A stretch of DNA of 63,747 nucleotides, counting the filler, from Octopus bimaculoides (taxonomy: Eukaryota): NCBI RefSeq assembly GCF_001194135.2. It is 4 parts of 4 records of this genome, joined end to end, with 100 filler letters (N's around TTAATTAATTAA, not from the genome) between each part and the next. Parts side by side here need not be neighbours in the genome. Positions count along the whole stretch, not along the records: positions 1 to 30,526 come from NC_069009.1; 3 more parts are not named here. One strand, 5' to 3'. Position numbers and translations under genes: made by a program. The notes beneath the pieces were generated by a model. The model had not been told where the DNA came from. It did no database searches and was given only the letters and a program-made list of their open reading frames with translations. Below, one piece after another: positions 119-30,133 of this stretch (position 1 is the stretch's first letter; each line of letters starts with the position of its first letter).

Positions 119-290
119 CTCACTCCTCGCTTCCGTTTCATTGGTTCCATATGAAACAGCAAAGACCAGACCATTGAAAGTGTCTTTCTCCACTTTGGCA
201 GCACCAATAGCAAGATTGGAATACGAAACCGCGACTTGCTGCTTTTCCAGTGGAATCTTTTCTGGGATTATTTCTATAATGTCCAGCATT
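119..290 (-). CDS. Copy A exon, GAIN domain ([57 protein letters not shown])
   Basis: 172 nt, cacAG acceptor and GTACGA donor, phase 2 to 0. Paralogue at 21856-22027 has the same length. Resembles ADGRG-type GAIN sequence. Confidence 0.88.
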
Positions 291-2053
291 CTGTGAGGAA
301 ATCAAGAAAACAAGGTTCAAATGACAGTGTGGTTCAAATACGTAATTAGTTATAGGTGTAATTACACTAATTATATTAATTAGCAAATCTTTATTAACAC
401 GACTGCTGTTAATGTTGCTTCTGTTGTTTTAACCGTTATTGCTGCTAATGTCATTACAACACCACCACCAACACTACCTCCACCTACCCACTCATCAATT
501 ACCACCACCACCACCACCACCACCACTACTACTACTACTACTTCTGATGCTACTGCTACTGCCGCTGTTGCTTCTGCATTAATAACAGATGTGATCTGAA
601 TTTTACCTGCTAACGAGTTTCATAGACTGTTCTGCTCCGACCAAATTTTCCTGTGGTATGTTCATAATTAGGCTGACAATAGGAAGTATATTCCACAGTG
701 TTATTTCCACGGGCACATTCGGTATCAATGGCACCATTTTCTCATTAATGACTACAACGAAGTCAGCATTTTGTTGTAAAGTCTCTGTTACCTCTGAAAT
801 TTTCGAAATCATTTTGGCAACCAGTTCAATATTTTCTGTAACGAAAAATTTAACAAAATTCAAGGGAATTTACAGCCATTTTGAGAGGAAATATTAGATG
901 CAAATTAAACACTATAGGACAATTAATGTTGTTGGCACTCCGTCGCTTACGACGTCGAGGGTTCCAGTTGATGCGATCAACGGAACAGCCTGCTCGTGAA
1001 ATTAACGCGCAAGTGGCTGAGCACTCCACAGACACGTGTACCCTTAACGTAGTTCTCGGGGATATTCAGCGTGACACAGTGTGACAAGGCTGACCCCTTT
1101 GAATTACAGGTACAACAGAAACAGGAAGTAAGAGTGAGAGAAAGTTGTGGTGGAAAAGTACAGCAGGGTTCGCTATCATCCCCTGCTGGAGCCTCGTGGA
1201 GCTTTAGGTGTTTTCGCTCAATAAACACTCACAACGCCCGGTCTGGGAATCNNNNNNNNNNNNNNNNNNNNNNNNNNNNNNNNNNNNNNNNNNNNNNNNN
1301 NNNNNNNNNNNNNNNNNNNNNNNNNNNNNNNNNNNNNNNNNNNNNNNNNNNNNNNNNNNNNNNNNNNNNNNNNNNNNNNNNNNNNNNNNNNNNNNNNNNN
1401 NNNNNNNNNNNNNNNNNNNNNNNNNNNNNNNNNNNNNNNNNNNNNNNNNNNNNNNNNNNNNNNNNNNNNNNNNNNNNNNNNNNNNNNNNNNNNNNNNNNN
1501 NNNNNNNNNNNNNNNNNNNNNNNNNNNNNNNNNNNNNNNNNNNNNNNNNNNNNNNNNNNNNNNNNNNNNNNNNNNNNNNNNNNNNNNNNNNNNNNNNNNN
1601 NNNNNNNNNNNNNNNNNNNNNNNNNNNNNNNNNNNNNNNNNNNNNNNNNNNNNNNNNNNNNNNNNNNNNNNNNNNNNNNNNNNNNNNNNNNNNNNNNNNN
1701 NNNNNNNNNNNNNNNNNNNNNNNNNNNNNNNNNNNNNNNNNNNNNNNNNNNNNNNNNNNNNNNNNNNNNNNNNNNNNNNNNNNNNNNNNNNNNNNNNNNN
1801 NNNNNNNNNNNNNNNNNNNNNNNNNNNNNNNNNNNNNNNNNNNNNNNNNNNNNNNNNNNNNNNNNNNNNNNNNNNNNNNNNNNNNNNNNNNNNNNNNNNN
1901 NNNNNNNNNNNNNNNNNNNNNNNNNNNNNNNNNNNNNNNNNNNNNNNNNNNNNNNNNNNNNNNNNNNNNNNNNNNNNNNNNNNNNNNNNNNNNNNNNNNN
2001 NNNNNNNNNNNNNNNNNNNNNNNNNNNNNNNNNNNNNNNNNNNNNNNNNNNNN

Positions 2054-2088
<35 letters not shown>

Positions 2089-2625
2089 TACGACGGGCTT
2101 CTTTCAGTTTCCGTCTACCAAATCCGCTCACAAGGCTTTGGTTGGCCCGAGGCTATAGTAGAAGACACTTGCCCAAGATGCCACGCAGTGGGACTGAACC
2201 CGGAACCATGTGGTTAGTAAGCGAGCTACTTACCACACAGTCACTCCTGGAATGTAAACTAGCAGTGTTATAGAATTTGAACTGATGGGCATTAATTCTA
2301 TAATCCTAATCTCTATAGGTATTTTATTTACTAGACTGTATAAGATTCTCTCACAAAAAGATGAAAGTGAAAACTTCAAAATTTGTGAAGAGAGAAAACA
2401 ATAGAAACGAACCAGTGTCTTGTTGCTTCATTTGTGTGACATGTAATTGTCGCAGTTTTTCGTATTTCTGTCATTGGCCAATGCAAAGTGCCATTGTTGG
2501 TTGATGTGTCTTCATTACAAATCTCTGAAAAAGATACAAAACGTAGATATATGAGATATACACGTGAGAAGACTTCAGCGTAATTTATATATATACTGAT
2601 TAAGTAATTGTAATTTAATCAATGC

Positions 2626-2684
<59 letters not shown>

Positions 2685-5127
2685 AAGAAGAAGAAGAAGA
2701 AGAAGAAGAAGAAGAAGAAGAAGAAGAAGAAGAAGAAGAAGAAGAAGAGAAGAAAACGAAGAGGAGGAGGAAGAGTTCGGATGTGCTAACTGGTTTGATT
2801 TATTATCATATATGAACCGATATACTCTCATAGTAACGCAAAATCGTCTGAATATGTAACAAAGGTCATTTTATTGGTTACTTTTCTTGAGGCAAGCCAG
2901 GTGTGACCTCACCATCGAACTATTAGCGAATTCGCTCAAAAGGGGGTTCGCAATAAATTTTATATTTTCCTTGTATGATATTTCCAGAAAGAAATATTTA
3001 CTTCTTTAGTGACAGACGTACAATGTATTAACATTTATGACAGTATTAACATATATTAACATGTATTAACATGTATGACAGTATTAACATATATTAACAT
3101 GTACTAACATATATTAACATGTATTAACATGTATGACAGGCAGTCATTGAAAGCGGTAGATGCTGATTAAAGAAGGAAGATCCGAGTTTGATTTTCTGTA
3201 TAGGAAATGTTTAATTTTCAGAATACGTAAGCTCAACTATTTTGAGTATGTGATCGAGAATCAAAACTTGTGGTTAATATCAGCAGAATTAACAATTAGA
3301 ATAGAGTTTGATATTTATATTGGGCACACAGCAGTGATACAGTTTCGCACTGTTACTCACAATTTTACATGTCATTATAACTTTCCGAAACATTCTACCG
3401 TTTTACCTCAAATCTGTAAAGCTCCAATGGCCAAAATGAACGCCTGTAAATGAAAGCTTAAAATGTTAGAAATACAAGCTATTACAGTAACATTATTGTC
3501 AGAATGTTACTGTTGTTTTTGCATCAAATAGGAGTAGCTGTGTGGTAAGTAGCTTGCTTACCAAACCACATGGTTCCGGGTTCAGTCCCACTGCGTGGCA
3601 CCTTGGGCAAGTGTCTTCTACTATAGCCTCGGGCCGACCAAAGCCTTGTGAGTGGATTTGGTACACGGAAACTGATGCTGGTGTGTTTATGTACCCGTAA
3701 CTTAGCAGTTCGGCAAAAGAGACCGATAGAATAAGTACTAGGCTTCCAAAGAATAAGTCCTGGGATCGATTTGCTCGACTAGAGGCGGTGCTCCAGCATG
3801 GCCACAGTCAAATGACTGAAACAAGTAAAAGAGTAAAAGAGTAAAAGAGTTAGGTAATATGGAAAATACTTCCGATATTGTGGTCGAAATTGCAGTACAA
3901 AACATAGTACAAGACTTCTGATGAAGGTATGACTCTTCAAGGTTCAAAGGCCTTGAAGACTCAAAACTTTTCATACATCCCTCGTATATGTATGTGTACG
4001 CGTGTGTGTACGTCTGTATGTTAAGCCTCAATGGTATCACTTACATGATGATGTCGACAATAATGAAGGAGATGGTATGTGATCGCTATAAAACGTTAAG
4101 AAACTCACTACTTACTTTCACCGAAAACCTTACTTTTCTGAATTCCCATATTACGCAATGCTTGGGATTTGTCCAAAATTGGGTCGATTTCCTGCAAAAC
4201 TTGATCTTTAGTACTTTTAATGTTAGTTATATAGTAAATAGTAAATATCACTAGACTATTCTTGGAACTGAAATGGAATCGATTTTCGTTTTTTTTAGTT
4301 TCAGCAACGCTAACCAGAATATTTTAGTACATGTCAATCAAATTGGTTTTAAAGATATTGATCTTATTCTCGTAACAAACGTTTAAACTTTCGCGTTATG
4401 AAATACGGTCAACTGATTGACCAGACAAAATTTCATTCATACATAATGGATGCCAAGGTACCAAGACTAGTGTGTGTCAAACCTAATTCCTTTAGTTTGA
4501 GTGTGGTTCCTATTATTACCTTGTTAATTACTCGTGTTAATTACTCGTGTTAATATAATAACCTGCATCCATACTCCAAAATATAATCGATCGTATTCAT
4601 GTTAAAAATCAATCAATCAATATATACATATAAACATGTATGCATATGTTCTATATATTACTGACAGTGGAGGCGCAATGGCCCAGTGGTTAGGGCAGCG
4701 GACTCGCGGTCATAGGATCGCGGTTTCGATTCCCAGACCGGGCGTTCTTCGATGAAATTTCCCCAAGACACCTGATGAAGGCTGGAGGGTATATCAGCCG
4801 AAACCTTGTGTTAACAACAAACAAGATGAGGACAAATATCACTCAAATGTAAATAAATTAAATAATGTAAATAATGAGCACGGTTATTTTATTATAATTG
4901 AAATATACAGTAAAAAACACTTGAATGTTTTAAGCAAAAATAAACAAATTACGAATAAAGTTGGTAAATGTTTTTACTTACCTACAATATTCAACTTTAA
5001 ATTCTCCTCGTTTCAAGCGTGATAATTCCTNNNNNNNNNNNNNNNNNNNNNNNNNNNNNNNNNNNNNNNNNNNNNNNNNNNNNNNNNNNNNNNNNNNNNN
5101 NNNNATATATAGTTGTGTGTGTGTTTT

Positions 5128-5175
<48 letters not shown>

Positions 5176-8100
5176 TGCATATATACAGGGTGCGGCAGAA
5201 GTACTGCCATTTTTATGTAGTAATTTTTATAGTACAGAAAAAATTGTTTAGTAATATTGTATTGTACAAAAAATTATTACACTACTTAAAGAATTGAAAA
5301 AAAAATTATGAAAATAAATTGCAGTCATTTTTAGAAATTTATTAAATATTGCTCCATCAAAATAACTTAATCTATTATAGAAAAACAACAAAATTCAATT
5401 GACATGTTCAAAACGCTCCCCTTCGTTTTCAGTTCGATGCTGGGACATATCAGCAAAATTTCTACAAACCATTTGACACATTTCCACGTTAATTGCAGAA
5501 ACTTAGTCAGAAATTGGTTGTATTAATTCATGAATTGTTTTCGGTTTGAGGAAGCAAACAAGATCTTTCAATACTTCCACAAGAAAACGTCAAGTAGTGT
5601 CAGGTCTGATGATCGTGATCAGCACCAATAAATATCGATCGTGATTTCCCTTATTCGCCTGTCTAACTAGCTAGCTCTCTTTGTCTCCCTCTCTCTATAT
5701 ATCACACTCACTCTCTATTGTTTTCACTTTCCTTTTTCAGACGCTATTCTCAACACCTTCAGTTTTCAGAATGTTTTTTCACTTTAACTTCAGTCATAAC
5801 TGTTTTCACTGTAAGTTTAAGTTTTCAATCGCTATTTACAAACGCACACCTATAAATTACTGACAGAAGGAATTTCACAATCATTGATGTAATTTCATGA
5901 TTTACTGATAGAAGTATCTTCATAAATTTCACTTCAATCCGTACGGTTTTGTGTTTTCTGTTGTTGATGTTTTTTTTTCTCTTTCCTTCGATACTGGCTC
6001 TTTGGTTCACTGAGTGACAAATTTCAATTCAACCTGTACAATACTTTATTTTCCGTTAACATTTCTTATTTACTTTCTGCTCGTCGTATTAAGAAACATA
6101 ATTTTTGTTACCAAGTTACTTTCATTGTATACTATCTTCTTTCACTCCTGTATTTCTGTATACGTATATAAGCATGCCTAGAAGGAAAGTGTCAAATTTG
6201 TCAACAATATCAAAGTCAGCCAAAATAATGTCGCTGTGCGGGGAAAGGGAGAGGGCGGCAGAAAGGGAAGCACGCCAAGAAACGAACAGACTGTGTACCA
6301 CAAAACTCAGAGCATCTCAAAGTGATGAGCGGAGATATGTACGAGGGACAAGGAATAGGATCTCCACTGCAGAAGGAAGAGCAGTTGCAACAGCGTAGAG
6401 TAGAAACTTCTTCAGGGTATTTAAGATATGTGTGCCAACACGACCGAGACCTGCAACTGAGCATTTGATACCATTTGACACCAAAGCATATATTGGCACA
6501 CTGTTTAAACAAAAGAGAGTTTCTAACCAAATGAATAATGTAGTCTACTAAATGTATTGAATTCATTACTTAGTTGGCGTTTGACGTTTGTTTTATATGA
6601 CATGTGTGCGTGTTTGTATGTGTGTGAGAGAGATAGTTAGAGTGAGAGAGAGAGAGAGACAAAGAGAGACAACAAAAGAAAACGTGTGTCTACTCACAAC
6701 TCTAGATACATTTTCAGCAAAGGTTTTCTTTTCATTGAACTTTTTGGCTGGGTCCATGGTATAAATCAGATGAAATTCAAAGGAATTGGTCCAACCTATT
6801 CAAGAATATGAAATTAAACTGAGATATTGCGATTATAAATGTGATACATGTCACAGATGCACTGAGTGGTATATGCAATGAACATAAAAATTTAGATATC
6901 CGCTTCTTTAATATCCCTTAATTAAACCAATACCTAAGATCAGTTGAAGTGGCTCTATAATACTGTATACTATGATTAATATACCCTTTTTTGTTGGCAC
7001 TCCGTCGGTTACGACGACGAGGGTTCCAGTTGATCCGATCAACGGAACAGTCTGCTCGTGAAATTAAAGTGTACGTGGCTGAGCACTCCACAGACACGTA
7101 TACCCTTAACGTAGTTCTCGGGGGAGATTCAGCGTGACACAGAGTGTGACAAGGCTGGCCCTTTGAAATACAGGTACAACAGGGTACAACAGAAACAGGA
7201 AGTAAGAGTGAGAGAAAGTTGTGGTGGAAGAGTACAGCAGGGTTCGCCACCATCCCCTGCCGGAGCCTCGTGGGGCTTTAGGTGTCTTCGCTCAATAAAT
7301 ACTCACAACGCCCGGTCTGGGAATCGAAACCGCGATCCACTGGGCCATTTCTCCTCCACGATTAATATACCCAGTTTACTAACAAATATGCAAGTGCATA
7401 TCTTTTTGCCTTATTGATTCTTAGGGCGGTAGAGACAGGTGATATTATGCAATGTTCTTATTAATCATTCATGCGTAATAAATCAGGTGTAATTATATCA
7501 CAAAATAAACAACAATTACCCATGAAATCATTCTTGTTACATAGGTTTCCGCTGCAGCAAGCTACACACGAAGTGCCATTGGCCCATTCATTGCATGTAG
7601 AAGTATTGTTTCTCATAGCTTCAAGGCAGTTTCTGTATGTGCTGCAAGATCTTTCAAACTTCAGTGTGACGCTATTCATTGATAGTTTATATTGGCATAC
7701 AGGCTGTAACAATAAATATTAAAGTCATATACTACTACTACAGCAATTGATACTACTACTGCTGCTGTTAGTAACAACAACAGCAACTTTGAATCATTGT
7801 TACAAAAATTATTCAAAACATCAAATACAATCGAAGCAAATTGATAAGGTTTTGGAAGATGACTGTAATTACCTGTAAAATATAACATATTCCACTGATA
7901 AAGGATGTTGTATAATTCCTTACACTAGCCAAATTTCTCATACTATATGTAAATACGGCCATCAACGCATGGCCCCTTTAAACGCCACACAGATCTATCT
8001 CCAATCATCAAGCTCAAAATATGACAAATTATTCTACTAAAAACAGTATTATTTTGCTAAAGCTTCTTGAAAGGGAAAGCTTTATCAATGTTTCGTACCA

Positions 8101-10035
8101 AATATCAAGCGTTCAAATATCATAAACAGCAGAAAGAAAGACACTGGTGCACTTCATAAAGGAAGATAGCCATAATTTAGTTTGGGACGAAATTCCTCAA
8201 GCCTTGATATGCAAAACCAAAATTTCATAAAGGGAAAGCTACATGATCATACTGATTTTGTGTTGATGGCTATGAATATAATTTAACAGAAAATAAGAAT
8301 GTAAGATTTATAGCTTACCGATTCTCCTGTACAGTTTGTCACTTGTGAATCCTTGCACATCATCTCTGAACATGTCTGACATTGCAAATTCTTTTGAAAT
8401 AACGAGTAATCTACAGAATATAAAATAATATCCGTATTTAGGGACCAAATAGTGTAAAGTATAGCAACAGGAGGAATTATTTACTTTGTGATGCATACGT
8501 GTTAGTATTATATATACTAGATATATAAATGTAATTAACAATTAAAACTGCTTTTATATTCGTTTGAAAATGTTTCAGTTTTGTACAAATTCAACTAAGA
8601 AAAGCATGAAAGCTACTTCCTGTTTTTCATGTTTATCCCGCTTTCACGAAGATGGGAAAATCCTGGAATTACCCAAATGAAACTAAGTAGTTCAAAGCGA
8701 TGCAAACGTTGATGTAGAGTATGCCCCCTTAAAAAAAAAACCTTTGAATATCTTTTAAATTATATCACAGAAAGCTCCTTCATAGTGTCCTGTCAGAAGC
8801 AACCGTCATAACACTTTCCAAGTGAATTCCCATGCGTGACCACCTCCTGAGACTCTGTATATCATCCAACCACCTCGTTCTTGCTTTACAAATAGGTTCT
8901 CTGACAGTTAAATCGGTTCGATGAATCAGCCTTGTGATTCTCATAATTTAATCATATGTCCATAGCTGTGACCTCTAAGTGTTCTCCTAGCTATGCACCC
9001 TGCTGTGTAATGTTATTCCAGAAGCCCTTTGGACTAACCCCATTTCAGCCGTTTTTATTCGCGATCGTACTTTTTCTGTCGTTAGCCAACAGTAATTCCC
9101 ATACATACGAGAAAAGGTACGAACACCAAAGTGAAGTCATAGTTTTGGCTTTGATGCTACAAACATATACTGTTTTGAATCCTGGATCAATTGTTTTATA
9201 TCAGGAGGTTTATTATGCTAATGTGGAGGCGCAATGGCCCAGTAGTTAGGGCAGCGGACTCGCGATCATAGGATCGCGGTTTCGATTCCCAGACCGGGCA
9301 TTGTGAGTGATTTTTGAGCGAAAACGCCTAAAGCTCCACGAGGCTCCGGCAGGGGATGGTGGCGAACCCTGCTGTACTCTTCCACCACAACTTTCTCTCA
9401 TTCTTACTTCCTGTTTCTGTTGTACCTGTAATTCAAAGGTTCAGCTTTGTTACACTCTGTCACGCTGAATCTCCCCGAGAACTACGTTAAGGGTACACGT
9501 GTCTGTGGAGTACTCAGCCACTTACACGTTAATTTCACGAGCAGGCTGTNNNNNNNNNNCTGTGGAGTACTCAGCCACTTACACGTTAATTTCACGAGCA
9601 GGCTGTTCCGTTGATCGGATCAACTGGAACCCTCGTCGTCGTACGCGACGGAGTGCCTTCCTTCCCTATTATGCTAATAATAAACACACGCCGCTTTGGT
9701 TCTACTTCATTTGTATTCGCCAGCTGGTCAGCTATTTAATTATTTAATCTACTGCTTTATTAGTCATCCAATATTTAATTATTTAATCTACTCCTTAATT
9801 AGTCATTCAATAAATCACTCGACCAGTTATGGTTGTCTAAGACCTTTTCGTTCTCATTTGTGACCTCTTCAATAACAGGGAGTGTGTGTTTTAGTGTGTG
9901 TGTGTGTATGTGAGTGTGAGCGTGTTCATACATGCGTTCACGCTGGTGTGTATGTTGGGATGTGAGCATGTGTGATACAGTTCATTCTGTGAGTGCATTA
10001 AAAAGAATATGCGCACGCATGTGTGTGTGTGTGTG

Positions 10036-10068
<33 letters not shown>

Positions 10069-10077
10069 GTGTTTGTT

Positions 10078-10113
<36 letters not shown>

Positions 10114-13100
10114 TGTGTGTGTGTGTGTGTGTGTGCACTTGCATCTTGCATTCATATCTGTGTGGGGCGTTGGATGTGTGAAGAGTGTAGATGGTAAAGA
10201 GTTAATTTCTTTATATCTTTATCTATTGGTTCCACTTTCATAAAACATTACATTTTGAGCAGCAGAACATGACGTGGCGTTTGGTAAAAGTTAAAAAAAA
10301 AAAACGACAAAAGTGAGTAAGATTTTACTAACTTTTACATTTGGAATATTGCATTATGGGTATTACTTCGTCTTGTTTATTTGCCGAATCTGTATGACAC
10401 TTGCCCAGGACTTTCACGGTTCTTTCGTATGTACTGTTCATATAATGTACCATGGCCGGCAGGTGACATCCACACATCATGTCATTATTACCTTTAAGGT
10501 CACTGTAATTATAAGGAGAACTTTAATACTGAAGACTCTTCAGGTCAAAAGAGAAACTCTAACTGGATTTCACAAGAAACAAGGATTATATAATTTCATT
10601 GAGTGTATAGAAGTCACGGCATGTAGACACACGTATGTATGTATATTATGAATACATGCACATGCACATACACACATACGTGTGTAGGCCACTGAAGTTA
10701 CTACTCCTGTGTTTTACGTGTATTGTTATAGTGCATGAAATTAGATCTATCAACCCTCATTCTATTCAAAAGCAGACTTTACAATGACAAAACACATACA
10801 TGGAAATAATTGTTTTGACCTATTAACATTTAAACAAACTCATTGCTATTCATTCTTAATTGTATTAAGCAATTGTGATTTTGATGTTCTCTATTTATGA
10901 TATGAGATTCGCAAAATGTTTTACTTTTCCAAGAAATAAAGATATTTGTTGTACATACATCTCCTTTACGCTGGGAAGGAATAAGAAAGCGTCATCCTCA
11001 ACCTTTTGTATTTGGTTTCTGCTCAAATTTCTGAAAGAGAGGAACAAATATAAGTTGTAATTCGGATTAGTGAAAAAAACAGATTTCTCCTGTCAAATAC
11101 TTTCTAAATTTCTCTTTAGCCAACGCTGACAGAATAAATGCTCGTGTTCACTGTACAGTTGTTTATTTTTCTGTATGGATCTCCTGGCTGTGTAATTTAC
11201 ACAGGAACAGGGTCGATCAATCTAGCTTAAATATGCTGAGTGAAGGGTAAATCTTCCCTAGTAAAACAACAAAAGATGGATGATGATAAATTATAAGAAT
11301 AACAACACAAAATTGTTATGTGCACAATATTGGTTTTACATTACATCCTCCTCTATGATACAAACGTCATTTTCATTCCATAGTCCAATAACAATACAAT
11401 AATATAAGAATACGAACATAGCAGAGTTTGAACTCAGGACGTAGCATCGGGTGAATTACTGTTAAAAATCTTCGTCCAGCGTTCTAACGCTTCTGCCAGT
11501 TCACAGCCTTTCACTTACGGAATAATACTAAACGTTTAAGTAGCCACAGACATTAGTAAATCTGAGACACATTTGCACACCCTTTCAGACACAAATAGAG
11601 AGATACTGTTAGATAAAAAAAGAGACGGAGAAAAAATCTGGGCAAACATATATTACTTAGAAATACATTAGGTCATACTATATGTAATGCGACTTTTTGT
11701 ATTTCTTTTATTTATCAAAATTAAGATAAACTATGTTCTTTTTAAATCTAAAATATACTCTCTTTTATTTCTTTTCTATCTCGTAGGCTTGCAATGCCGC
11801 CCCCACCCCACCTTCCAAAATTTACGCAAGTATCTATGAATGGTTGACTGACAGAATTGAAGCTCATCTACTAGGTCCTCAACAGTTACAATAGCATTTT
11901 GGCCCGCCAGGTTCTGCAGGTCGTCCTCGTTCAGCTCTAGAGATGTTCCAAGATGAAACTGGTCTTCTAGGCTGTAGTTTCCGGCTCGGGATTTCTGGAG
12001 CTACCGTTGACACTGTCTTACGCTAATTGTCCGATCCCCGTATACTGCACTTTCCGTTGCATTTTTGGCTTTATTGCTCCCATGCATGAAAATTTACCGA
12101 AAATGCACCTCTGCAACTTCCATTATAGATTTGAAAAAATAAATGTTAAACCTGAATCGCACCCTTCAAAACGTACACTAGCAACTTGTTGGATGTAGTT
12201 TTTTCCGTCCCCGCCCGAATTTTAGTCCATGCAATTGAAAAAGCCGCATTATTTAGAGGATAGCCCAATACAAAGTAAGAGTATCTGCAACACATATCTA
12301 ACTTACAGATTTTCAAGTTTCGTAAGATTTATGAAGAATCTTTGTCCAATATTCGAGATCAGATTTCCGGATAGATTTCTGTGAGATGAAGGAGAATTGA
12401 AAAGAAATTGTAGACAAGAAATTTCGGATGAAATATTATATGTTACGCCTAATTTATTAAATGCCAGAAGAGACAAGAAAGAACAAGAAGTGAAGAAATT
12501 ACATGATGATAATGATGGAAAGACATACAGTATTTAGAAATATTAAATAAATAGTATCAGCAACACACATCCAGCTTACAGCTTTTGTAACTTGGGCAAA
12601 TGTTCAAGGAATCCGGGTTCAATCGTCGATATATTATTGGATAGATCACTGTAAGACAAAACAGAATTGAAAAGAATTAGTACACTAGAAATTTGGGATG
12701 AAATATTAAATATTACGTCTAATTAATTACATGCCTTAAGAGAACTAAAAGTGGAGAAATTACATGATGATAACGATGAAGAATTTTCCGAAGAGTAAAA
12801 ACAAAATGTTTTATCAGTATTCTTTATCTTTTGTACCCCAAAGAAAAAGAGAATGGAGAAAATTATAGGAATATGTATATACATACACAAAGGCAGATAT
12901 ATAAATATGCACTCACGAAATAATCTTTGCTACTATAGGCACAAGGCCTAGACTTTTGTGGGGGGGGGGGGTCATTCGATTGGATTAACCCCGGTACGAA
13001 ACCGGCATTTAAAATCTGTAATCATCAAAAATACGAAAGGTAAAGTCGAACTCTGCAGAGTTTTAACTCAGGACGTCGCGGAAAGTGAATTACGGCTGAG

Positions 13101-15056
13101 AAATTCGTCCAGCGGTCTACCGATTCTACCAGTTCACCGCCTTTCACTTAAGTAATAATACTAAACGCTTATGTAGTCACAGACATTAATATATCTGAGA
13201 CATTTGCACACTCTTCCAGACGCATATAAGGAGATAATGTTAGATGAAAGACGAGACGTAGAAAAAAATATGAGCAAACCTTAAATTATTTAGAACTACA
13301 TGGGGTCATCCTATATATAATGCGAGTTTTTGTAATTCTTTTTGTTCATCAAATTTAAGATTTAAAAAAAATGTTCATTTTTAATCTAAGATATATTCCC
13401 CTTTATTTTTTTTTTCTATCTATCTCGTAGACATGGAAGGCACCCCGTGAAAAATTCAAGCACGTGTCTATGAATGGTTGAATGACAAAATTCAAGCTTA
13501 TCTACTAGATCTTCAACAGTTACGATATCATTTTGTTCCACCAGGCTCTGCTAGCGTTCTCGTGCAGCTCTACAGTTCTTCCAAGTGCAAATTCGTCATC
13601 TAAGCCATAATTTCCGGCTGGAATTTCTGGAACAACCGCTGACGCTCGTGTACGCTTATTGTCCTGTCCCCGTTTACTGCATTCATATTGCTAGCACTTT
13701 CTACTGCGTTGTTGGATTTATTGCATTTATAAAGGGAAATATACCGAATATGCTCTTTTATCACTTCCATTATAGATTTGAAACCAAAACTGAATTGCAG
13801 TCTTCAAAACGTGCACTAATAAATACAAGGTGAAATTATTACCTGCTTTTACAGCAAGTTGATGGAAGTAGTTCATCCCGTCCCCGTCCGACTTTTAGTT
13901 CATGCACTTGAAAAAGCCGCATTATTTAGAGGATGACTCAATAGAAAGTAATTGTGACAGCAACACATATCGAACTTACAGCTCTTCTAAATCTGGAAGA
14001 TTTTTGATGAATCCTTGTCCAATATTCGAGATCTGGTTATTGGATAGATCTCTGTAAAGTGAATGAGAAATGAAAAAGTATATAACAAAATACATTTGTG
14101 ATGAAATATTAAGTATCATATGTAATTAAATGCAGGAAGAGAACGGAAAGAATTAGAAATGAAAGAATTAGATGATATATATATATGTGTGTGTGTGTGT
14201 ATAAATATATATATAACTGCNNNNNNNNNNNNNNNNNNNNNNNNNNNNNNNNNNNNNNNNNNNNNNNNNNNNNNNNNNNNNNNNNNNNNNNNNNNNNNNN
14301 NNNNNNNNNNNNNNNNNNNNNNNNNNNNNNNNNNNNNNNNNNNNNNNNNNNNNNNNNNNNNNNNNNNNNNNNNNNNNNNNNNNNNNNNNNNNNNNNNNNN
14401 NNNNNNNNNNNNNNNNNNNNNNNNNNNNNNNNNNNNNNNNNNNNNNNNNNNNNNNNNNNNNNNNNNNNNNNNNNNNNNNNNNNNNNNNNNNNNNNNNNNN
14501 NNNNNNNNNNNNNNNNNNNNNNNNNNNNNNNNNNNNNNNNNNNNNNNNNNNNNNNNNNNNNNNNNNNNNNNNNNNNNNNNNNNNNNNNNNNNNNNNNNNN
14601 NNNNNNNNNNNNNNNNNNNNNNNNNNNNNNNNNNNNNNNNNNNNNNNNNNNNNNNNNNNNNNNNNNNNNNNNNNNNNNNNNNNNNNNNNNNNNNNNNNNN
14701 NNNNNNNNNNNNNNNNNNNNNNNNNNNNNNNNNNNNNNNNNNNNNNNNNNNNNNNNNNNNNNNNNNNNNNNNNNNNNNNNNNNNNNNNNNNNNNNNNNNN
14801 NNNNNNNNNNNNNNNNNNNNNNNNNNNNNNNNNNNNNNNNNNNNNNNNNNNNNNNNNNNNNNNNNNNNNNNNNNNNNNNNNNNNNNNNNNNNNNNNNNNN
14901 NNNNNNNNNNNNNNNNNNNNNNNNNNNNNNNNNNNNNNNNNNNNNNNNNNNNNNNNNNNNNNNNNNNNNNNNNNNNNNNNNNNNNNNNNNNNNNNNNNNN
15001 NNNNNNNNNNNNNNNNNNNNNNNNNNNNNNNNNNNNNNNNNNNNNNNNNNNNNNNN

Positions 15057-15105: not shown

Positions 15106-15226
15106 GAAAACATTAATTATTTACAGATATACAATCAAAAAATAGGCAACTTACAACGCCTTTAATTCTTGCAGATTAACGAAGGATCCATTTGCAACAT
15201 TCGAGATCTGATTATTGGATAGATCT
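119..15226 (-). CDS. Adhesion GPCR copy A (partial): LRRs + Ly6/uPAR-like domain + HormR + GAIN; 11 visible exons
   Basis: Eleven exons with AG/GT boundaries, compatible phases and no internal stops. The second HormR exon is not visible (presumably in the gap 1252-2053). The 5' end is not seen (gap 15320-15419) and the 3' end lies left of the window. Confidence 0.88.
607..835 (-). CDS. Copy A exon, GAIN subdomain A ([12 protein letters not shown]...[10 protein letters not shown])
   Basis: 229 nt, tttttcgttacAG acceptor and GTAAAA donor, phase 1 to 2. Paralogue at 22434-22665. Confidence 0.88.
928..1251 (-). mobile_element. tRNA-derived SINE family 1, cut by a gap
   Basis: Near-identical to 6991-7359, 9223-9657 and 21040-21314. 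Absent from the homologous intron of copy B. Confidence 0.85.
2091..2248 (-). mobile_element. tRNA-derived SINE family 2 head
   Basis: Matches 3529-3675, 51436-51600 and 34920-35049 (GGTTCAGTCCCAC B-box-like motif). Confidence 0.85.
2413..2524 (-). CDS. Copy A exon, HormR domain first half ([36 protein letters not shown])
   Basis: 112 nt, ttttttcAG and GTTCGT, phase 1 to 2. Shows the C...WP.T......C...ATR.C HormR pattern. Confidence 0.88.
2626..2750. repeat. Compound (TAG)n(AAG)n microsatellite
   Basis: Seen directly. A (TAG)n lies at the homologous position of copy B (24568-24621). Confidence 0.95.
3022..3139. repeat. Minisatellite of ATGTATTAAC-type units
   Basis: Repeated atgtattaac/atatattaac/gtatgacagtattaac blocks. 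Confidence 0.85.
3529..3850 (+). mobile_element. SINE family 2 with tail ending in (GTAAAAGA)n
   Basis: Head as in the other family-2 copies; tail matches 34663-34830 in reverse. Confidence 0.85.
4667..4746 (+). mobile_element. SINE family 1 head only (tRNA-like A/B boxes)
   Basis: GGAGGCGCAATGGCCCAGTGGTTAGG...GGTTTCGATTCCC, as at 9223. Confidence 0.8.
4768..4811 (+). ncRNA. Hammerhead-ribozyme-like motif in a probable Penelope-type repeat
   Basis: ACAC-CTGATGA-A-GGCTG(10 nt)CAGCC-GAAA-cctt-GTGT: core, stem II and stem I are visible, but stem III and the cleavage triplet are non-canonical. Confidence 0.45.
5184..5660 (-). mobile_element. Tc1/mariner remnant
   Basis: TA-CAGGGTG terminus and a degenerate [14 protein letters not shown] (WPxRSPDLTPLDFFLW) motif on the minus strand near 5560-5625. 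Confidence 0.6.
5700..6700 (+). mobile_element. Helitron 5' fragment with RepHel N-terminus
   Basis: ATG near 6175 reads [19 protein letters not shown]...[26 protein letters not shown], like the N-terminal repeats of invertebrate Helitron ORFs. Boundaries approximate. Confidence 0.55.
6991..7359 (-). mobile_element. SINE family 1, near full length
   Basis: Matches 928-1251; has a deletion in the head. Confidence 0.85.
7520..7703 (-). CDS. Copy A exon, Ly6/uPAR-like domain second half (PVCQYKL...[17 protein letters not shown])
   Basis: 184 nt, phase 0 to 1, ending in the CCxxxLCN LU-domain signature. Confidence 0.88.
8319..8410 (-). CDS. Copy A exon, Ly6/uPAR-like domain first half ([30 protein letters not shown])
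   Basis: 92 nt, tctgtAG and GTAAGC, phase 1 to 0. Contains the CxxC start of the LU fold. Confidence 0.85.
9223..9657 (+). mobile_element. SINE family 1, full length
   Basis: tRNA-like head, body and GGAGTGCC tail. An internal duplication around the 10-N gap is artefactual. Confidence 0.85.
10718..10776 (-). CDS. Copy A linker exon closing the last LRR ([19 protein letters not shown])
   Basis: 59 nt, gtaaAG and GTAAAA. Its phase 2 to 1 bridges the phase-2 LRR exons to the phase-1 Ly6 exon. The same acceptor is kept in copy B at 27344. Confidence 0.65.
10959..11030 (-). CDS. Copy A LRR exon ([24 protein letters not shown])
   Basis: 72 nt, phase 2-2, ctttcAG and GTATGT, LxLxxNxI consensus. 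Confidence 0.88.
11815..12190 (-). mobile_element. Mariner transposase N-terminal remnant, co-duplicated with LRR exons (also about 13440-13830 and 30185-30400)
   Basis: Minus strand reads [25 protein letters not shown]...ELNEDDLQ...[14 protein letters not shown] (mariner HTH region). Confidence 0.7.
12307..12378 (-). CDS. Copy A LRR exon ([24 protein letters not shown])
   Basis: 72 nt, phase 2-2, ctcacAG and GTAAGT. Confidence 0.9.
12580..12648 (-). CDS. Copy A LRR exon ([23 protein letters not shown])
   Basis: 69 nt (one codon shorter), phase 2-2, cttacAG and GTAAGC. Confidence 0.88.
12935..13143 (-). mobile_element. SINE family 3 (AAGGCGGCGAGCTGGCAGAA head), degraded; homologue at about 11420-11510
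   Basis: Similar to the copies at 31550-31756 and 53660-53874. Confidence 0.7.
13980..14051 (-). CDS. Copy A LRR exon ([24 protein letters not shown])
   Basis: 72 nt, phase 2-2, tttacAG and GTAAGT. Confidence 0.9.
15155..15226 (-). CDS. Copy A LRR exon ([24 protein letters not shown])
   Basis: 72 nt, phase 2-2, ttttacAG and GTAAGT. Confidence 0.9.
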
Positions 15227-15562
15227 CTGTAAAATAAAAGAGAAATGAAAAAGTATAAAACAAAATACCTTTGTGATGAAATATTAAGTATCATATGTAA
15301 TTAAATGCAGGAAGAGAAGNNNNNNNNNNNNNNNNNNNNNNNNNNNNNNNNNNNNNNNNNNNNNNNNNNNNNNNNNNNNNNNNNNNNNNNNNNNNNNNNN
15401 NNNNNNNNNNNNNNNNNNNAATATTTATAGAATTATTAGAATAATTTGGAAACAGCTACAACATGGACTCTTACTGGATGAAATTTATTTAAGTTACTAG
15501 ACTTTTTTCATAAATTTTATATAAAACAAAATATGCACTGGTTTAAATGAGTTTTCACTTAC

Positions 15563-15686
15563 CTTACAAACAGCTGTTAGTTTTGTACTATACTCTTGGA
15601 ACCCAGCAAGAAAGATTAAATAAGTGACAGCTAAAGAAATGCACAAATTTACTAAAATCTTGGAAGCCATTAATTTCCATAGATTT
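15563..15686 (-). pseudogene. Copy B exon, ICL1-TM2 (NLWKLMASKILVNLCISLAVTYLIFLAGFQEYSTKLTAVCK)
   Basis: 124 nt, gcAG and GTAAGT, phase 2 to 0. Typical aGPCR TM2 motif (I..NLC.SL....LIFL.G). Confidence 0.88.
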
Positions 15687-15984: not shown

Positions 15985-16106
15985 TTTGAATAAACATGAA
16001 TTGTTACAGTCAGAATGAGACAGACAAATGATATTCCGCAGCCAATGTTAGAAATAATAGACAAGAGTTCTTTATTTTTTACATCTCCTTCATTCTGGTA
16101 AACATC
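15985..16106 (-). pseudogene. Copy B exon, TM1 (DVYQNEGDVKNKELLSIISNIGCGISFVCLILTVTIHVYS)
   Basis: 122 nt, ttgcAG and GTAAGT. Typical aGPCR TM1 motif (L..IS.IGCGIS..CL.LT). Confidence 0.9.
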
Positions 16107-17229: not shown

Positions 17230-17370
17230 CATTAGTATAGCAAAACTTGTAAGATGTTAATAGAAACACAATACTTTCTTCCCAGGTACATAGTTGGATA
17301 TGTCACAGCCTTTTGTCGACCAATGTTCAGAGGATTTATCCCAATAGACACATTGTGGATTGGTGGCATT
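17230..17370 (-). pseudogene. Copy B GPS exon (NATNPQCVYWDKSSEHWSTKGCDISNYVPGKKVLCFY*HLTSFAILM)
   Basis: 141 nt, phase 0-0. C-W-W-GC-C and HL/TSFAILM motifs, with an in-frame TAA at 17257-17259. Confidence 0.9.
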
Positions 17371-18067: not shown

Positions 18068-18202
18068 CGGAACTATTACATGGAATGATATTTTAATTGG
18101 TTCATCAAGATTGGTAACTGGTTCGTGAACGTTAAGAATATTTACAGCAATAATATGGCTGTTAATTTTAGGATTTGTTTTGGTACTGGACATTTTCATT
18201 AC
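18068..18202 (-). pseudogene. Copy B GAIN exon (VMKMSSTKTNPKINSHIIAVNILNVHEPVTNLDEPIKISFHVIVP)
   Basis: 135 nt, phase 0-0. INS.IIA...V.NL.EP+.ISF GAIN-B motif. Confidence 0.88.
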
Positions 18203-21855: not shown

Positions 21856-22027
21856 CTCACTCCTTGGTTCCGTTTCATTGATTCCAAATGAAACAGCATA
21901 GACCAGACCATTTAAAGTGTCCCGCTCCACTTTGGCAGCACCAATAGCAAGATTAGAATATGGAGCTGTGACTTGCTGCTCTTCCAGTGGAACATTTTCT
22001 GCGATTGTTTCTATAACGTCCAGCATT
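21856..22027 (-). pseudogene. Copy B GAIN exon (MLDVIETIAENVPLEEQQ...NETEPRSE)
   Basis: 172 nt; paralogue of 119-290. Confidence 0.88.
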
Positions 22028-22433: not shown

Positions 22434-22665
22434 TTGTTGACACTTCTGTCAGACTGTTCTGCCACAGTCAAAATCTCCTCCGTTATGTTTATCATATTGT
22501 TGATACTAGGAAGAACATTGTTCAGTGTTATATTGACGGACACATTTGATGTCAATGGCACCATTTTCTCAAGTGTGTCTACAGCCAAGTCAATATCTTC
22601 TTCTCTGAAATACGCTGATTGCTGTGAAATATTCAGGAGCTTTGCTGAAAACTCCTCAACATTCC
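22434..22665 (-). pseudogene. Copy B GAIN-A exon (GNVEEFSAKLLNISQQ...AEQSDRSVN)
   Basis: 232 nt, phase 1 to 2; paralogue of 607-835. Confidence 0.88.
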
Positions 22666-23852: not shown

Positions 23853-24021
23853 CCTTATCAATGTCTTCACTTGTGATGTTCTTTAGTTGTCGAGTTATCC
23901 ACTCGGTATTGAAACACTGAGACATGTTTGGCTTTAGCCAGATACCGGTAAATGGCGAACACTTTCGTAATGTCATATATTGACTTGTTGTCATTTCTTG
24001 TATGCTACCGTTCTGGAAGAA
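23853..24021 (-). pseudogene. Copy B HormR second exon (...KCSPFTGIWLKPNMSQCFNTEWITRQLKNITSEDIDK), frameshifted
   Basis: ttttcAG and GTGAGT boundaries. 169 nt is incompatible with phase 2 to 1; the incoming frame reads CSSRTVAYKK*. Confidence 0.8.
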
Positions 24022-24621: not shown

Positions 24622-25961
24622 NNNNNNNNNNNNNNNNNNNNNNNNNNNNNNNNNNNNNNNNNNNNNNNNNNNNNNNNNNNNNNNNNNNNNNNNNNNNNNN
24701 NNNNNNNNNNNNNNNNNNNNNNNNNNNNNNNNNNNNNNNNNNNNNNNNNNNNNNNNNNNNNNNNNNNNNNNNNNNNNNNNNNNNNNNNNNNNNNNNNNNN
24801 NNNNNNNNNNNNNNNNNNNNNNNNNNNNNNNNNNNNNNNNNNNNNNNNNNNNNNNNNNNNNNNNNNNNNNNNNNNNNNNNNNNNNNNNNNNNNNNNNNNN
24901 NNNNNNNNNNNNNNNNNNNNNNNNNNNNNNNNNNNNNNNNNNNNNNNNNNNNNNNNNNNNNNNNNNNNNNNNNNNNNNNNNNNNNNNNNNNNNNNNNNNN
25001 NNNNNNNNNNNNNNNNNNNNNNNNNNNNNNNNNNNNNNNNNNNNNTGTGTTCAAATCCCATTCCGGTGTGGTAGAATTAATCCATCATCCGGCTTAACAA
25101 AGCTTATCTGACAGCTTCAGTGCCACTAATGAAAAAGAACATTCTGATATAAGTATTTGATCTAGATCTCTAGTTTGGTGACACCTACTTTCCTATCTCT
25201 CACCCTCTACGAAGAACCTGTAAAAGGATCATGGAATTGTCACGAATTAATATGTCATTAAGTATAAGAGGGTTGGGATCTTCTGGAGACATTTGTGATT
25301 ATGTGTGTCTGCCTTAAGAGTCGTCATAAGAAGAGCATTGCTTAATAGTCGTCATCAGAACAGCATTCAGTAATATATAAGACTTAGACGTGTGTATGTT
25401 TGTCTGTGTGTCATGTTTCAATGGTAACACCTATTTATGACAGCGAATATGACGCCGACAATGATGAAAAGGATGATAATGAGTGATAGCGATAAAAATG
25501 TAAAGAAATTATAATGGGTGATAACGATAGAAATGTTAAGAAACTCACTACTTACTTTCACCTTTTGATGTCACCTTAACTTGGTTTATTCTCAAGTTAC
25601 GCAATGTTTGGGGGGTATTCAAAATTTTGTAAAGGTTTTGCGAAACTTGATCTTTAGTACTTCCAATAAGGGTTGTACAGTAAATAGTAAACACCACTGT
25701 ACTTTTCTCCAACCTGAAACACGATTTTAAAAAAAGAAGTTAAAAAAAAATTAGTTTCAGCAACGACAACCAGAATGCTTTCGTACACGTCAGTCTAACT
25801 GGTTTTAAAGATGTTGATCTTATCCTCATAAGAGAAATCTAAATTTCATCGTTATGTAATACGGTCAGCTGATTTGATTTATCCATAATGGACGCCAATG
25901 TACCAAGACTAATGGTAATAATAGCCACCACGCTAAAAGTAAAGGAATTAACAATACTTAC

Positions 25962-26145
25962 CAGGGAAATCATTCTTGTTGCATAAGTTGTCGCTGCAAC
26001 AAGCAACAAAAGAAGCGCCATTGGACCATTTTCTACACGTAAGGGAATTGTTTCTCACAGCTTCACGGCAGTGCAAGTATGTGCTGCAGGACCTTTTAAA
26101 CTTCAATGTACCGCCATTCACTGATAGCCTATATTGGCAGAGAGG
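25962..26145 (-). pseudogene. Copy B Ly6-like exon (PLCQYRL...[19 protein letters not shown])
   Basis: 184 nt; paralogue of 7520-7703, with one Cys replaced by Phe. Confidence 0.88.
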
Positions 26146-27258: not shown

Positions 27259-27343
27259 CATTAGTCCTGGACAACTTGTCATTTCTGAATTATCGCACAT
27301 CATCCCTGAACATGTTTGACACTCTCATGCAATTCGAAGCAGA
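27259..27343 (-). pseudogene. Copy B fused exon (linker exon 5' part + Ly6 first-half 3' part) with in-frame TGA
   Basis: 27321-27343 matches copy A 10753-10776 and 27259-27321 matches copy A 8319-8381. Reads LLRIA*ECQTCSGMMCDNSEMTSCPGLM. Confidence 0.8.
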
Positions 27344-27526: not shown

Positions 27527-27595
27527 ATATTCTTTATGCTGGGAAGGTATAAGAAAGCGCCATCATTTTTTCGTAAACGGTTGTAGCTCAAATTT
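27527..27595 (-). pseudogene. Copy B LRR exon (NLSYNRLRKNDGAFLYLPSIKNI)
   Basis: 69 nt, phase 2-2; paralogue of 10959-11030. Confidence 0.85.
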
Positions 27596-28064: not shown

Positions 28065-28560
28065 ATCAAGACTAATTTTCAAATTAGCTGAGTCCGTGGC
28101 TCTGCTCACAGCGATATACAGCTGGCTGTGTGTAAACATCTGAGTGAACAGAAGCACACCAACACGATTCAAAGTCTGGCCCTGAGACTTGTTAGCTGTG
28201 AATGAAAAGGCTAGTTTGATGGGAAACTGCCTGCGTCGTATTGGAGGGGATACTGGTTGCTGGAGGTTACCAGTGGTATCCGATGCATGCACAGGCGCTT
28301 ACCACTGTGAGGGCCAATCGTTATCACTGCCTCGATGACGTGAGAATTGAGGTCCGTGGCGGTGTAATTTGTTCCGTTGCAATGTCCAATGGTAGGGTCA
28401 AAATTTCGTAGGAGCATTATAGGACAGTACTTTCTTAGTGAGATCCTATGTATAGATAGTCCCGATGGATTCAAGTTGTTAAGAAGATCCCGTGGATACT
28501 AGTGATAATTTCCATCGACTATAGTGTCAGAACTTAGATATCGTCGACTTTCTCCAGGGA
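28065..28560 (-). mobile_element. Helitron PIF1-type helicase C-terminal fragment (frameshifted)
   Basis: IMLLRNFDPTIGHCNGT and RRQFPIKLAFSFTANKSQGQTLNRVGV...HSQLYIAVSRAT motifs. Confidence 0.9.
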
Positions 28561-28589
28561 AGTTGTTAATCATGTGGTCATTAACATTA

Positions 28590-29200
28590 TTTCACATTTC
28601 ACATTCGCAAAACATTTTCCTTTGATGAGTTTATTCATTCGGAGTAAGAGAAAAGTTATAAGGAGCAACATCGAGTGAATTGTGAGGGTGGATAAGCGGG
28701 ATCATGCCATTTTTGGTCAACAACTCTCTCACACACAAGACTGTGTGTGCAGGTGCATTGTCGTGATGAAACCACCATTCTCTACGTTTTCACAAGTTGG
28801 AGCGTGTTTGTCTCACCGCAATTGACACTGAAATTCCGAATAAAATCTCTAGTTAACAGTTTGACGAGGAGGAACAAATACTGTGTGGACAACTCCTTTC
28901 GCATTGACGAAACAAATCAGCATCGTCTTGAACTTAGACTTCAATTGACGTGCTTTTGGTGAGCGCGGTGACATTGAATGCTTCCCTTGACTTCATTGCT
29001 GCTTTGTTTACGGGACGTAGCCGAAACATTAGCTTTCGGCACCGGTGATGACCTTCGAAAAATAGTCCGGATTAACTGGAAACTGTTTCTTTCAGTTCAC
29101 GATACGCATTATGTCGTGACCGCTTTTCATCTTCCGTAGCAAGCGAGGCACAAATTTTGCTGCAACTCTTGTTTTGTAATTGTATATGTGCATGTGTTCG
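28590..29200 (-). mobile_element. Mariner remnant
   Basis: Degenerate HPHNSLDVAPYNF (HPPYSPDLAPSDF) and catalytic-region residues on the minus strand. Confidence 0.65.
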
Positions 29201-29890
29201 TGTTTGTGTGTGTGTGTGTGCATGCGTGTTTGTGTGTGTGTATGTGCGTGCGTGTGCGTGCGTGTGTGTATGTGTGTGTGTAGGTGTGTGTGTGTGTGTG
29301 TGTGCGCGTGTGTGTGTGTGTGTGTAAGTCTGCATCTGTAAATCTGCCTCTCTGTCTGAAGTTACAAAAATGGTATTGAATGCAACGAAATTCAGTTTAC
29401 AATTTAGATTCGTCATATTTTGATTTAAGTATAGTTATATGTATGTGTATATAAGCATTGTATCTTTGTGTTTGTATCTATTTTACCAACGTTGAGTGTT
29501 GCTCCCTCTACATCTGTATACTGAAGACTTTATATATAATAATAAAATAGAAACAATTGTGGGCTTTATAATGAGAAATCTAATAAACGCAACTGTCTCT
29601 ATATTTATCATTTGTTGTCAAAATGTCTGAATTTTTCGGAATTCTGCTAAAGGATATTTGGATTAATTTATCATACATGAGGATTTAACTTGGATGTGTA
29701 TTCTACTTTTCATTACTGGTGTCTGTCGAATATAGTTAGATCGGAATCTCTGAGTTTCCTTACTTCTCCCACATGGCGTTTCCCCGTATTGGGGAATTTT
29801 GTTTTTAATCGTTATTTGTTACGTTGTTCAGATCAATTTATATAAATCACAACAGAAATGTAAACCACAAACACTAATATCCTTAAACAT

Positions 29891-29955
<65 letters not shown>

Positions 29956-30061
29956 GTGAACGCCTGTTAGAAAGGATAAAAGAAAGAGCGAAGATAAAAG
30001 GGAAGAGAAGATATGTAGAAATATATGATCAGATAAATAATATCAGGAAGATCAAACTTAC

Positions 30062-30133
30062 AGCTCCTTTAAATTGATAAGACTGTAGAATGATTCATGT
30101 TCAATATTCGTGATAAAATTATGGTCTAGATAT
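30062..30133 (-). pseudogene. Copy B LRR exon (YLDHNFITNIEHESFYSLINLKEL)
   Basis: 72 nt, phase 2-2, ctttcAG and GTAAGT. Confidence 0.88.

Follow-up and report, generated by a model that had tools for sequence, protein, structure and literature searches.

A probable LU (three-finger) domain in a leucine-rich-repeat adhesion receptor family of Octopus, with one decayed and one gapped gene copy in Octopus bimaculoides

Introduction

G protein-coupled receptors of the adhesion type (aGPCRs) are classified and studied largely via the modules of their ectodomains, and the LU (Ly6/uPAR, three-finger) domain is a well-known protein-binding fold. Can the two be parts of one protein? This question is raised by a locus of Octopus bimaculoides at positions 119-30133 of the window, which is the whole stretch of 63,747 nucleotides analysed here, with positions 1 to 30,526 taken from NC_069009.1. 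The first-pass annotation of the locus proposed two adjacent, functional receptors, in which leucine-rich repeats (LRRs), an LU domain, HormR and GAIN precede the GPCR proteolysis site (GPS) and the transmembrane (TM) helices.

We consider it likely that the window takes in a section of a gene cluster on CM046629.1, that the clustered genes are related members of an octopus-expanded aGPCR family, and that of the two copies seen the downstream one is probably functional and the upstream one is a pseudogene. All coding signal of the locus is on the minus strand. Copy A is upstream (30133->15563), and copy B is downstream (15226->119) and extends past window position 1. The exons had been placed correctly: an LRR exon of copy A begins at 30133, and the last copy B exon in the window ends at 119. 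The copies are colinear paralogues with 70-82% nucleotide identity over exons and some intron stretches. Two same-strand paralogues were thus rightly recognized, but copy A is a pseudogene and the adjacency of the two genes over a 100-N gap is unproven.

Receptor family and domain architecture

A composite query returned 257 proteins, and the top 56 were all from Octopus, most of them named "adhesion G-protein coupled receptor G6-like". Exons of the locus matched annotated Octopus proteins, the best of them at a tblastn E-value of 1e-27. Both the LU segment and the GPS motif were present in nine annotated models (O. sinensis, O. vulgaris and O. bimaculoides). The order in intact members was signal peptide, LRRNT, LRRs, LRRCT, a 12-Cys LU domain, an α/β middle domain of ~100 residues, HormR, GAIN/GPS with an HL/T site, and seven transmembrane helices (7TM). 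Judged from these annotated sequences, the LRR-LRRCT-LU-α/β-HormR-GAIN architecture is real in intact paralogues of three Octopus species. The LRR-LU-HormR-GAIN order proposed before is supported by its joining in single full-length proteins of these species, but the LRRCT exon (10502..10333) and the middle domain had been missed. It did not hold that the whole architecture could be read in the window, where the composite mixed exons of A and B and neither copy alone shows all of it.

Pfam analysis of full-length members gave 7tm_2 (1e-36 to 1e-37), GPS (1e-13 to 1e-15; 6e-15) and LRR_8. Both marks of class B2, a GPS with HL/T or S site and a secretin/adhesion 7TM domain, were found in the paralogues, and their cleavage is predicted from the motif. 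In the locus itself the 7TM region is represented by TM1-2 for copy A and TM1-4 for copy B. Pfam HRM was detected in paralogue P0005 (30.4 bits against a cutoff of 26.2), on the segment homologous to the HormR exons of the window, and was not reported in P0001, P0003 and P0011.

Ritschard et al. 2019 (PMC6408891) described an octopus-specific aGPCR expansion, "group 3", whose members carry GPS and 7TM, LRRs being present in 5/22 sequences. The genes of this group were co-localised and were expressed in axial nerve cord, suckers and skin. That paper describes LRR and Death domains only, with no mention of Ly6/LU or of an α/β middle domain. The NCBI "ADGRG6-like" proteins and group 3 are the same family as the genes studied here; family and species being the same, what the window contributes is a pseudogene and a member interrupted by gaps.

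Many Octopus models with slit-, chaoptin-, decorin- and TLR5-like names (P0021, P0027, P0028, P0041 and P0045) had LRRs and LU but no GAIN or 7TM, and they are probably split pieces of these receptors. Three tandem LU domains were seen in P0021. A more distant aGPCR with an LU domain, P0128 (O. bimaculoides, 1283 aa), carries a Death domain at its C-terminus (Pfam 3e-6) and probably is the Death-domain member mentioned by Ritschard et al.

Identity of the LU domain

The 12-Cys segment beginning LQCQTC, which the first-pass annotation quoted as LU, is exactly copy B 8410..8319 joined to 7703..7520. None of the 12 cysteines varies among 20 octopus paralogues, and all are also kept in Argonauta, in a gastropod and a scallop, and in an octopus protein named "ADGRA3". 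The segment has the conserved Cys framework of LU domains, with the LxCxxC start at the N-terminal and the CCxxxxCN end at the C-terminal.

In a PDB profile search, human LYPD1/Lynx2 came first, aligned end to end with 12/12 Cys in register (E 0.036), followed by ACVR1 and LYPD6. Foldseek also placed LYPD1 at the top (E 0.012, prob 1.0), then TGF-β-family receptor ectodomains, LYPD6/6B, three-finger toxins and uPAR, so that almost all of its best matches had a three-finger fold. The octopus LU profile matched only 32 proteins among 1.84 billion representatives, and in sea-cucumber and acorn-worm proteins the matched regions coincided exactly with those assigned by Pfam to Toxin_TOLIP, CD59 or UPAR_LY6. 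Comparison by hhalign with Pfam-certified LU domains gave 96.8% probability (E 2.5e-10). In addition, NCBI named one octopus fragment "ly6/PLAUR domain-containing protein 1-like".

Several results weigh against the LU assignment. No LU family of Pfam (UPAR_LY6, Toxin_TOLIP, CD59) was matched at E ≤ 1, either with the isolated segment or with full proteins. The AlphaFold model of the domain was weak (predicted local distance difference test, pLDDT, 66; predicted template modelling score, pTM, 0.52), and a two-domain run brought no improvement (27-56). None of the Foldseek matches reached E ≤ 0.001. The structural check that had been suggested for this segment came out mixed, with no Pfam match and a weak model but a Foldseek list led by LYPD1. 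Could the segment be a convergent or other disulfide-rich module unrelated to Ly6/uPAR? The absence of a Pfam match, a low-confidence model with predicted helices, and Foldseek and PDB E-values that are all > 0.01 would fit such a module. However, the register with LYPD1 covers every cysteine and takes in both the LxCxxC start and the CCxxxLCN end, LYPD1 leads the fold list and the sequence list alike, and the profile matches, the hhalign result and the NCBI name all point to LU domains. We regard an unrelated module as quite improbable, and from the sequence comparison and the fold search the segment is very probably an LU domain, as first proposed.

In its 12-Cys register, its LxCxxC start and its CCxxxLCN end the octopus LU domain agrees with LYPD1/Lynx2, LYPD6 and LYPD6B. 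The LU proteins known so far are small and GPI-anchored (glycosylphosphatidylinositol-anchored) or secreted, or they are receptor ectodomains (uPAR, TGF-β-family), whereas the octopus LU is an internal aGPCR module encoded by two exons.

Middle domain

Between LU and HormR there is a domain of ~100 aa, which in copy B is encoded by the exons 6795..6698, the one ending at 4982, and 4267..4116. Its model showed a β-α-β-β-α-β order with pLDDT ~80. Foldseek gave generic ferredoxin-like folds only (E > 0.006), Pfam gave no match, and the PDB profile search had no meaningful match. To see it as SEA-like, as in ADGRG6, would be a guess.

Copy A: a decayed copy

The signal peptide, LRRNT and earlier LRRs of copy A are upstream of the window. 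The following exons and remnants were identified.

30062..30133, minus strand: LRR exon, 72 nt, YLDHNFITNIEHESFYSLINLKEL; 100% match to residues 122-145 of P0034 (XP_014782533.1), splice sites
27527..27595, minus strand: last LRR exon, 69 nt, with a 3-bp deletion; DNA alignment to copy B 11030..10959
27259..27324, minus strand: remnant of LU exon 1, ECQTCSGMMCDNSEMTSCPGLM; acceptor and 5' end deleted
25962..26145, minus strand: LU exon 2, ninth conserved Cys changed to Phe (GASFVACC, codon 26010..26008); tblastn
25556..25713, minus strand: middle-domain exon 3 (EKSTVVFTIYC...KGE); 100% match to P0034
24332..24443, minus strand: HormR exon 1, FCNEDTSTYNGTFNWPMTKVGTNATIRCHANIATRH; splice sites and homology
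23853..24021, minus strand: HormR exon 2, frameshifted; translation
22434..22665, minus strand: GAIN exon 1; 100% match to P0034 residues 274-351
21856..22027, minus strand: GAIN exon 2; tblastn with P0001 and P0012, 70% identity
20079..20216, minus strand: GAIN exon 3, IHNSQVDDMMDFISLPKSLL...KLYR; homology
18068..18202, minus strand: GAIN exon 4; splice sites and homology
17230..17370, minus strand: GPS exon, broken; translation and homology
15985..16106, minus strand: linker and TM1 exon; splice sites and homology
15563..15686, minus strand: TM2 exon, the last before the 100-N gap; splice sites and homology

Copy A is a decaying pseudogene, because it carries five independent lesions. The first is a deletion that joins the intron after the LRRs to the middle of LU exon 1, so that the LRRCT exon and the LU acceptor are lost. 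Sequence upstream of 27321 aligns to the copy B intron (10753-10790), not to the B exon, and an in-frame TGA (27327..27325) stands just upstream of ECQTC. The last LRR exon before it keeps a working donor (ATgtatgt), and the alternative GT site, AGCgtaaag in copy B, reads ATAAAG. The second lesion is the Cys-to-Phe change at LU cysteine 9, which is invariant in the 20 paralogues and in mollusc homologues. The third is a deletion of ~3 kb: positions 25914-25946 of A correspond to 4472-7504 of B, and middle-domain exons 1 and 2 were looked for in copy A with no match, being deleted.

The fourth lesion is the frameshift in HormR exon 2, where the splice-consistent frame reads CSSRTVAYKK-stop (TGA 23993..23991) and the conserved ...RKCSPFTGIWLKPNMSQC (RKCSPFTGIW) is in another frame. 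The fifth is in the GPS, which reads ...KKVLCFY-TAA-HLTSFAILM, with Tyr at 17262..17260 and the stop at 17259..17257, against the family motif C-S-C-N-H-L/T. Thus the HL/TSFAILM sequence and the TM1-2 exons named in the first-pass annotation do exist in copy A (17370..17230, 16106..15985 and 15686..15563), but a Cys-to-Tyr change and a TAA codon come before them.

An NCBI protein model, P0034, matches four copy A exons at 98-100%. It has an open frame of 351 aa with a signal peptide, LRRNT and LRRs. This model exists only because the LU exons and 14 HormR codons are skipped, and it ends before the GPS. The proposal that both copies are functional tandem receptors can draw on this protein-coding model, and also on the recognizable exons with good splice sites in each copy. 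Against the five lesions, which P0034 avoids only by leaving out the LU, part of HormR and the GPS, we hold that proposal to be extremely unlikely.

Sequencing or assembly errors in a gap-rich draft could also create broken exons: its 30 kb contain eight gaps, and the same contigs were simply used again in the newer record. A single-base error might account for one lesion, but not for all of them. Kilobase deletions, point changes and an indel are all found among the lesions, which are distributed over 10 kb and away from gap edges, so errors are a very improbable explanation.

Another idea is that copy A still encodes a truncated LRR protein that is secreted, as modelled in P0034, and serves as a decoy or soluble binder. 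The signal peptide, LRRNT, LRRs and open 351-aa frame would suit this, and many loci of the family are annotated as LRR-only or LRR+LU. However, the model needs splice sites that are not conserved and reads through HormR and GAIN remnants, and most "LRR-only" models are likely split annotations. We consider a secreted product unlikely, though less so than errors of assembly, and retain the reading of copy A as a pseudogene.

The copy A intron between the LRR exons contained a Pif1/Helitron-type helicase fragment (Pfam Pif1_2B 1e-10) and a mariner-like transposase fragment ("HHDNAPAH"), the transposon remnants being at 28065-28498 and 28634-28789, both on the minus strand. Meanwhile, an open reading frame (ORF) of 129 aa at 19239-19628 (plus strand), also in a copy A intron, weakly matched a GIY-YIG nuclease (below the cutoff, at E 0.055), and may be a mobile-element remnant.

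Copy B: a gapped copy with an open frame

Fourteen exons of copy B were found in the window.

15155..15226, minus strand: LRR exon 1 of five in the window; spliced translation
13980..14051, minus strand: LRR exon 2; spliced translation
12580..12648, minus strand: LRR exon 3, 69 nt; spliced translation
12307..12378, minus strand: LRR exon 4; spliced translation
10959..11030, minus strand: LRR exon 5; spliced translation
10333..10502, minus strand: LRRCT (cysteine cap) exon, ending QYSKCK; matches the start of P0152 (LOC106873848)
8319..8410, minus strand: LU exon 1, Cys 1-4; spliced translation
7520..7703, minus strand: LU exon 2, starting PVCQYKL, Cys 5-12; spliced translation, LYPD1 alignment and hhalign
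6698..6795, minus strand: middle-domain exon 1; spliced translation
4982..5030, minus strand: middle-domain exon 2, 5' part lost in gap 5031-5104; spliced translation
4116..4267, minus strand: middle-domain exon 3, family Cys changed to Tyr (FTIYY, codon 4233..4231); spliced translation
2413..2524, minus strand: HormR exon 1; spliced translation
607..835, minus strand: GAIN exon 1, open frame, divergent (~45% identity to paralogues); spliced translation
119..290, minus strand: GAIN exon 2, the last in the window; spliced translation

Spliced translation showed an open frame without stop and with conserved splice sites in 14/14 of these exons. They form three runs. The first has 300 residues and contains five LRRs, LRRCT, LU and middle-domain exon 1, with Pfam LRR_8 at 5.8e-37 (first nine exons). 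The second contains middle-domain exons 2-3 and HormR exon 1, and the third contains the two GAIN exons. In the window, copy B therefore encodes five LRRs, LRRCT, the 12-Cys LU, the α/β middle domain, half of HormR and the start of GAIN. An alternative donor at 10970 for the last LRR exon was rejected, as the family and P0152 show the LRRCT exon following in phase from 10959.

Past the window, copy B continues with an intact VLCSCNHLTSFTILM and then TM1-4 at 22483-27800 of L002, which is from the newer assembly record CM046629.1 (up to the end of the DNA examined). Its cleavage site, just outside the window, is an intact CSCNHL/TSF. The next GAIN exon after the window (about residues 531-568 of P0001) was unmatched, and most probably is in a 1003-N gap beyond position 1. 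Copy B is missing its 5' end, a HormR exon and a portion of one middle-domain exon, as well as at least one GAIN exon past the window; most simply, these lie in assembly gaps.

The open frame, as read from the spliced exons, suggests that copy B is probably a functional gene. Several points speak against this: the Cys-to-Tyr change in the middle domain, the divergent GAIN exon and the unassembled 5' end, which leaves the integrity of the gene unproven. The NCBI models, which weigh against the overall reading of the locus, are truncated for both copies (351 aa at copy A, 321 aa at copy B). The copy B model in NCBI is P0152 (LOC106873848).

The CM046629.1 annotation splits copy B into two models, at L002 10001-18105 and 19669-28105, likely because of the assembly gaps. 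The first is the 321-aa "uncharacterized protein" (P0152), which retains an intron and reads through at its end, and the second is a 568-aa GPS/7TM protein.

Assembly gaps and linkage of the two copies

Contig by contig, N runs included, the locus is 100% identical to GCA_001194135.2 CM046629.1:820005-848109 (Octopus bimaculoides). There are eight N gaps in 30 kb, and none of them can be closed, because the newer chromosome record CM046629.1 reuses the same contigs and the same N runs. Five are intronic (9550-9559, 14221-15056, 18603-19028, 20343-21039 and 24622-25045), with no expected exon missing at any of them. The gap at 1252-2053 most probably contains HormR exon 2 of copy B, and the gap at 5031-5104 interrupts middle-domain exon 2 of copy B. 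The last one is as follows.

15320..15419, strand not applicable: assembly gap of exactly 100 N at the join of copy A and copy B, of unknown length; the same in GCA_001194135.2

It is common to use 100 N as a placeholder for a gap of unknown length. This is the sole gap of exactly 100 N in the locus, and the TM3-7 exons of copy A and the 5' exons of copy B (signal peptide and LRRNT) are absent exactly there. So the two copies might not be truly adjacent, their juxtaposition having been made by scaffolding over the join. On the other side, both assembly versions put A and B together, and several further family members are on the same 12-Mb record, one of them (P0012) ~70 kb off. We regard false juxtaposition as a possible but less likely case. 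Adjacency and spacing are unproven, because this gap separates the TM2 exon of A from the first visible LRR exon of B; because of the further members on the record, adjacency, or at least close linkage, is likely, whatever the spacing.

We also rejected the idea that A and B are haplotype duplicates of one gene, as the identity is merely 70-82%. In addition, the LU exon of copy A is 76-78% identical to O. sinensis/O. vulgaris proteins and ~70% (by eye) to copy B. A separate gene is present at L001, the locus of paralogue P0012, with ~90% identity in one exon only.

Distribution and subfamily position

Further matches of the LU profile were the "ADGRA3" protein of O. bimaculoides, an aGPCR with a Death domain, an aGPCR of Argonauta hians and two unnamed transcript-derived full-length proteins. 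A protein of the gastropod Nucella lapillus has the same order (LRR, LU, middle domain, a segment in the HormR position, GAIN/GPS and 7TM), and a scallop fragment has LU and middle domain. Because of these two, the architecture is, as far as such homologues tell, at least molluscan and not cephalopod-specific. Two further homologue searches returned 14 matches (all but one from Octopus) and 2 matches. The earlier suggestion of a lineage-expanded cephalopod family is borne out by the strong expansion in Octopus (PMC6408891), but the Nucella and scallop homologues do not allow a restriction to cephalopods.

The solved structures closest to the GAIN and 7TM regions were ADGRG2 (4e-73) and ADGRG6 (5e-66), with the ADGRG6 ectodomain 6v55 matched over HormR-GAIN. 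Meanwhile, many family members carried the precomputed Pfam PF26588 "ADGRA2/3 GAIN". On these comparisons we would place the family in neither the ADGRA nor the ADGRG subfamily.

The likeness to ADGRA2/ADGRA3 (GPR124/GPR125) consists in the N-terminal LRR block with its cysteine cap, HormR, GAIN and 7TM, and an LU-bearing O. bimaculoides relative is named ADGRA3. Vertebrate ADGRA2/3 have an immunoglobulin (Ig) domain between LRRCT and HormR, whereas the octopus family has the LU and α/β domains in that position. Pfam detected no Ig domain in the octopus family members, and their ectodomain order is not that of ADGRA.

With ADGRG6/GPR126 the similarity of GAIN and 7TM is high. ADGRG6 has a small α/β (SEA) domain just before HormR. 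The CUB and pentraxin (PTX) domains of the ADGRG6 ectodomain were not detected by Pfam in the family members.

Novelty and significance

In the literature searched, no paper was found that combined aGPCR or GAIN with Ly6, uPAR or LU terms. Ly6, three-finger and uPAR are not mentioned in the 2019 aGPCR reclassification, or in the accessible part of the 2026 Pharmacological Reviews aGPCR review, which agrees with the previous statement that no characterised aGPCR was known to have an LU domain. The LU-in-aGPCR combination is real, and apparently undescribed, while the family expansion was already known (Ritschard et al. 2019).

An LU domain whose 12 Cys are kept from octopus to gastropod and scallop offers a handle for the ligands of orphan, lineage-expanded receptors. 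It also bears on the evolution of LRR-type aGPCR ectodomains, with LU and α/β domains in molluscs where vertebrate ADGRA has Ig.

Proposed mechanism

Three things were observed: the domain order, the intact cleavage motif in copy B and paralogues, and the fact that the LU cysteines are conserved. If vertebrate aGPCRs are a guide, the GAIN domain of intact members would cleave itself at HL/T. The LRR-LU arm may bind a partner or ligand protein. Once the N-terminal fragment is displaced, TSFAILM would be exposed as a tethered agonist, which in turn might activate the 7TM domain. Counting against this scheme, autoproteolysis, tethered-agonist activation and ligand binding are all drawn entirely from the vertebrate analogy. 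A chemotactile or immune role is speculation.

Among LU proteins, those of the Lynx family bind nicotinic acetylcholine receptors, and the suckers of octopus have expanded nicotinic-receptor-like chemotactile receptors. From such analogy we speculate, as a long shot, that LU-bearing aGPCRs could be partners of nicotinic-receptor-like proteins in suckers. This idea comes from the LYPD1/Lynx-type LU and from the report of the family in suckers and axial nerve cord (PMC6408891). If true, an LU-bearing aGPCR could dock on nicotinic-receptor-like channels or sense their state, and so couple contact chemosensation to G-protein signalling.

Repeats in the locus

Copies of a repeat of ~300 bp resembling a short interspersed element (SINE), 88-94% alike, were found at 928-1251, 6991-7338, 9219-9657 and 21040-21317, with short SINE-like pieces at 4666-4746 and 21235-21314. 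SINE-like copies are present in introns of both A and B and in the paralogous locus L001, and several adjoin assembly gaps. Long intronic microsatellites (CA, CTT and GTT/GCN-type) were located at 383-619, 2620-2800, 9890-10200, 17850-18000, 22130-22440, 29150-29400 and 29900-30040. They occur at equivalent positions in the two copies (383-619 and 22130-22440) and mimic long ORFs in the ORF list.

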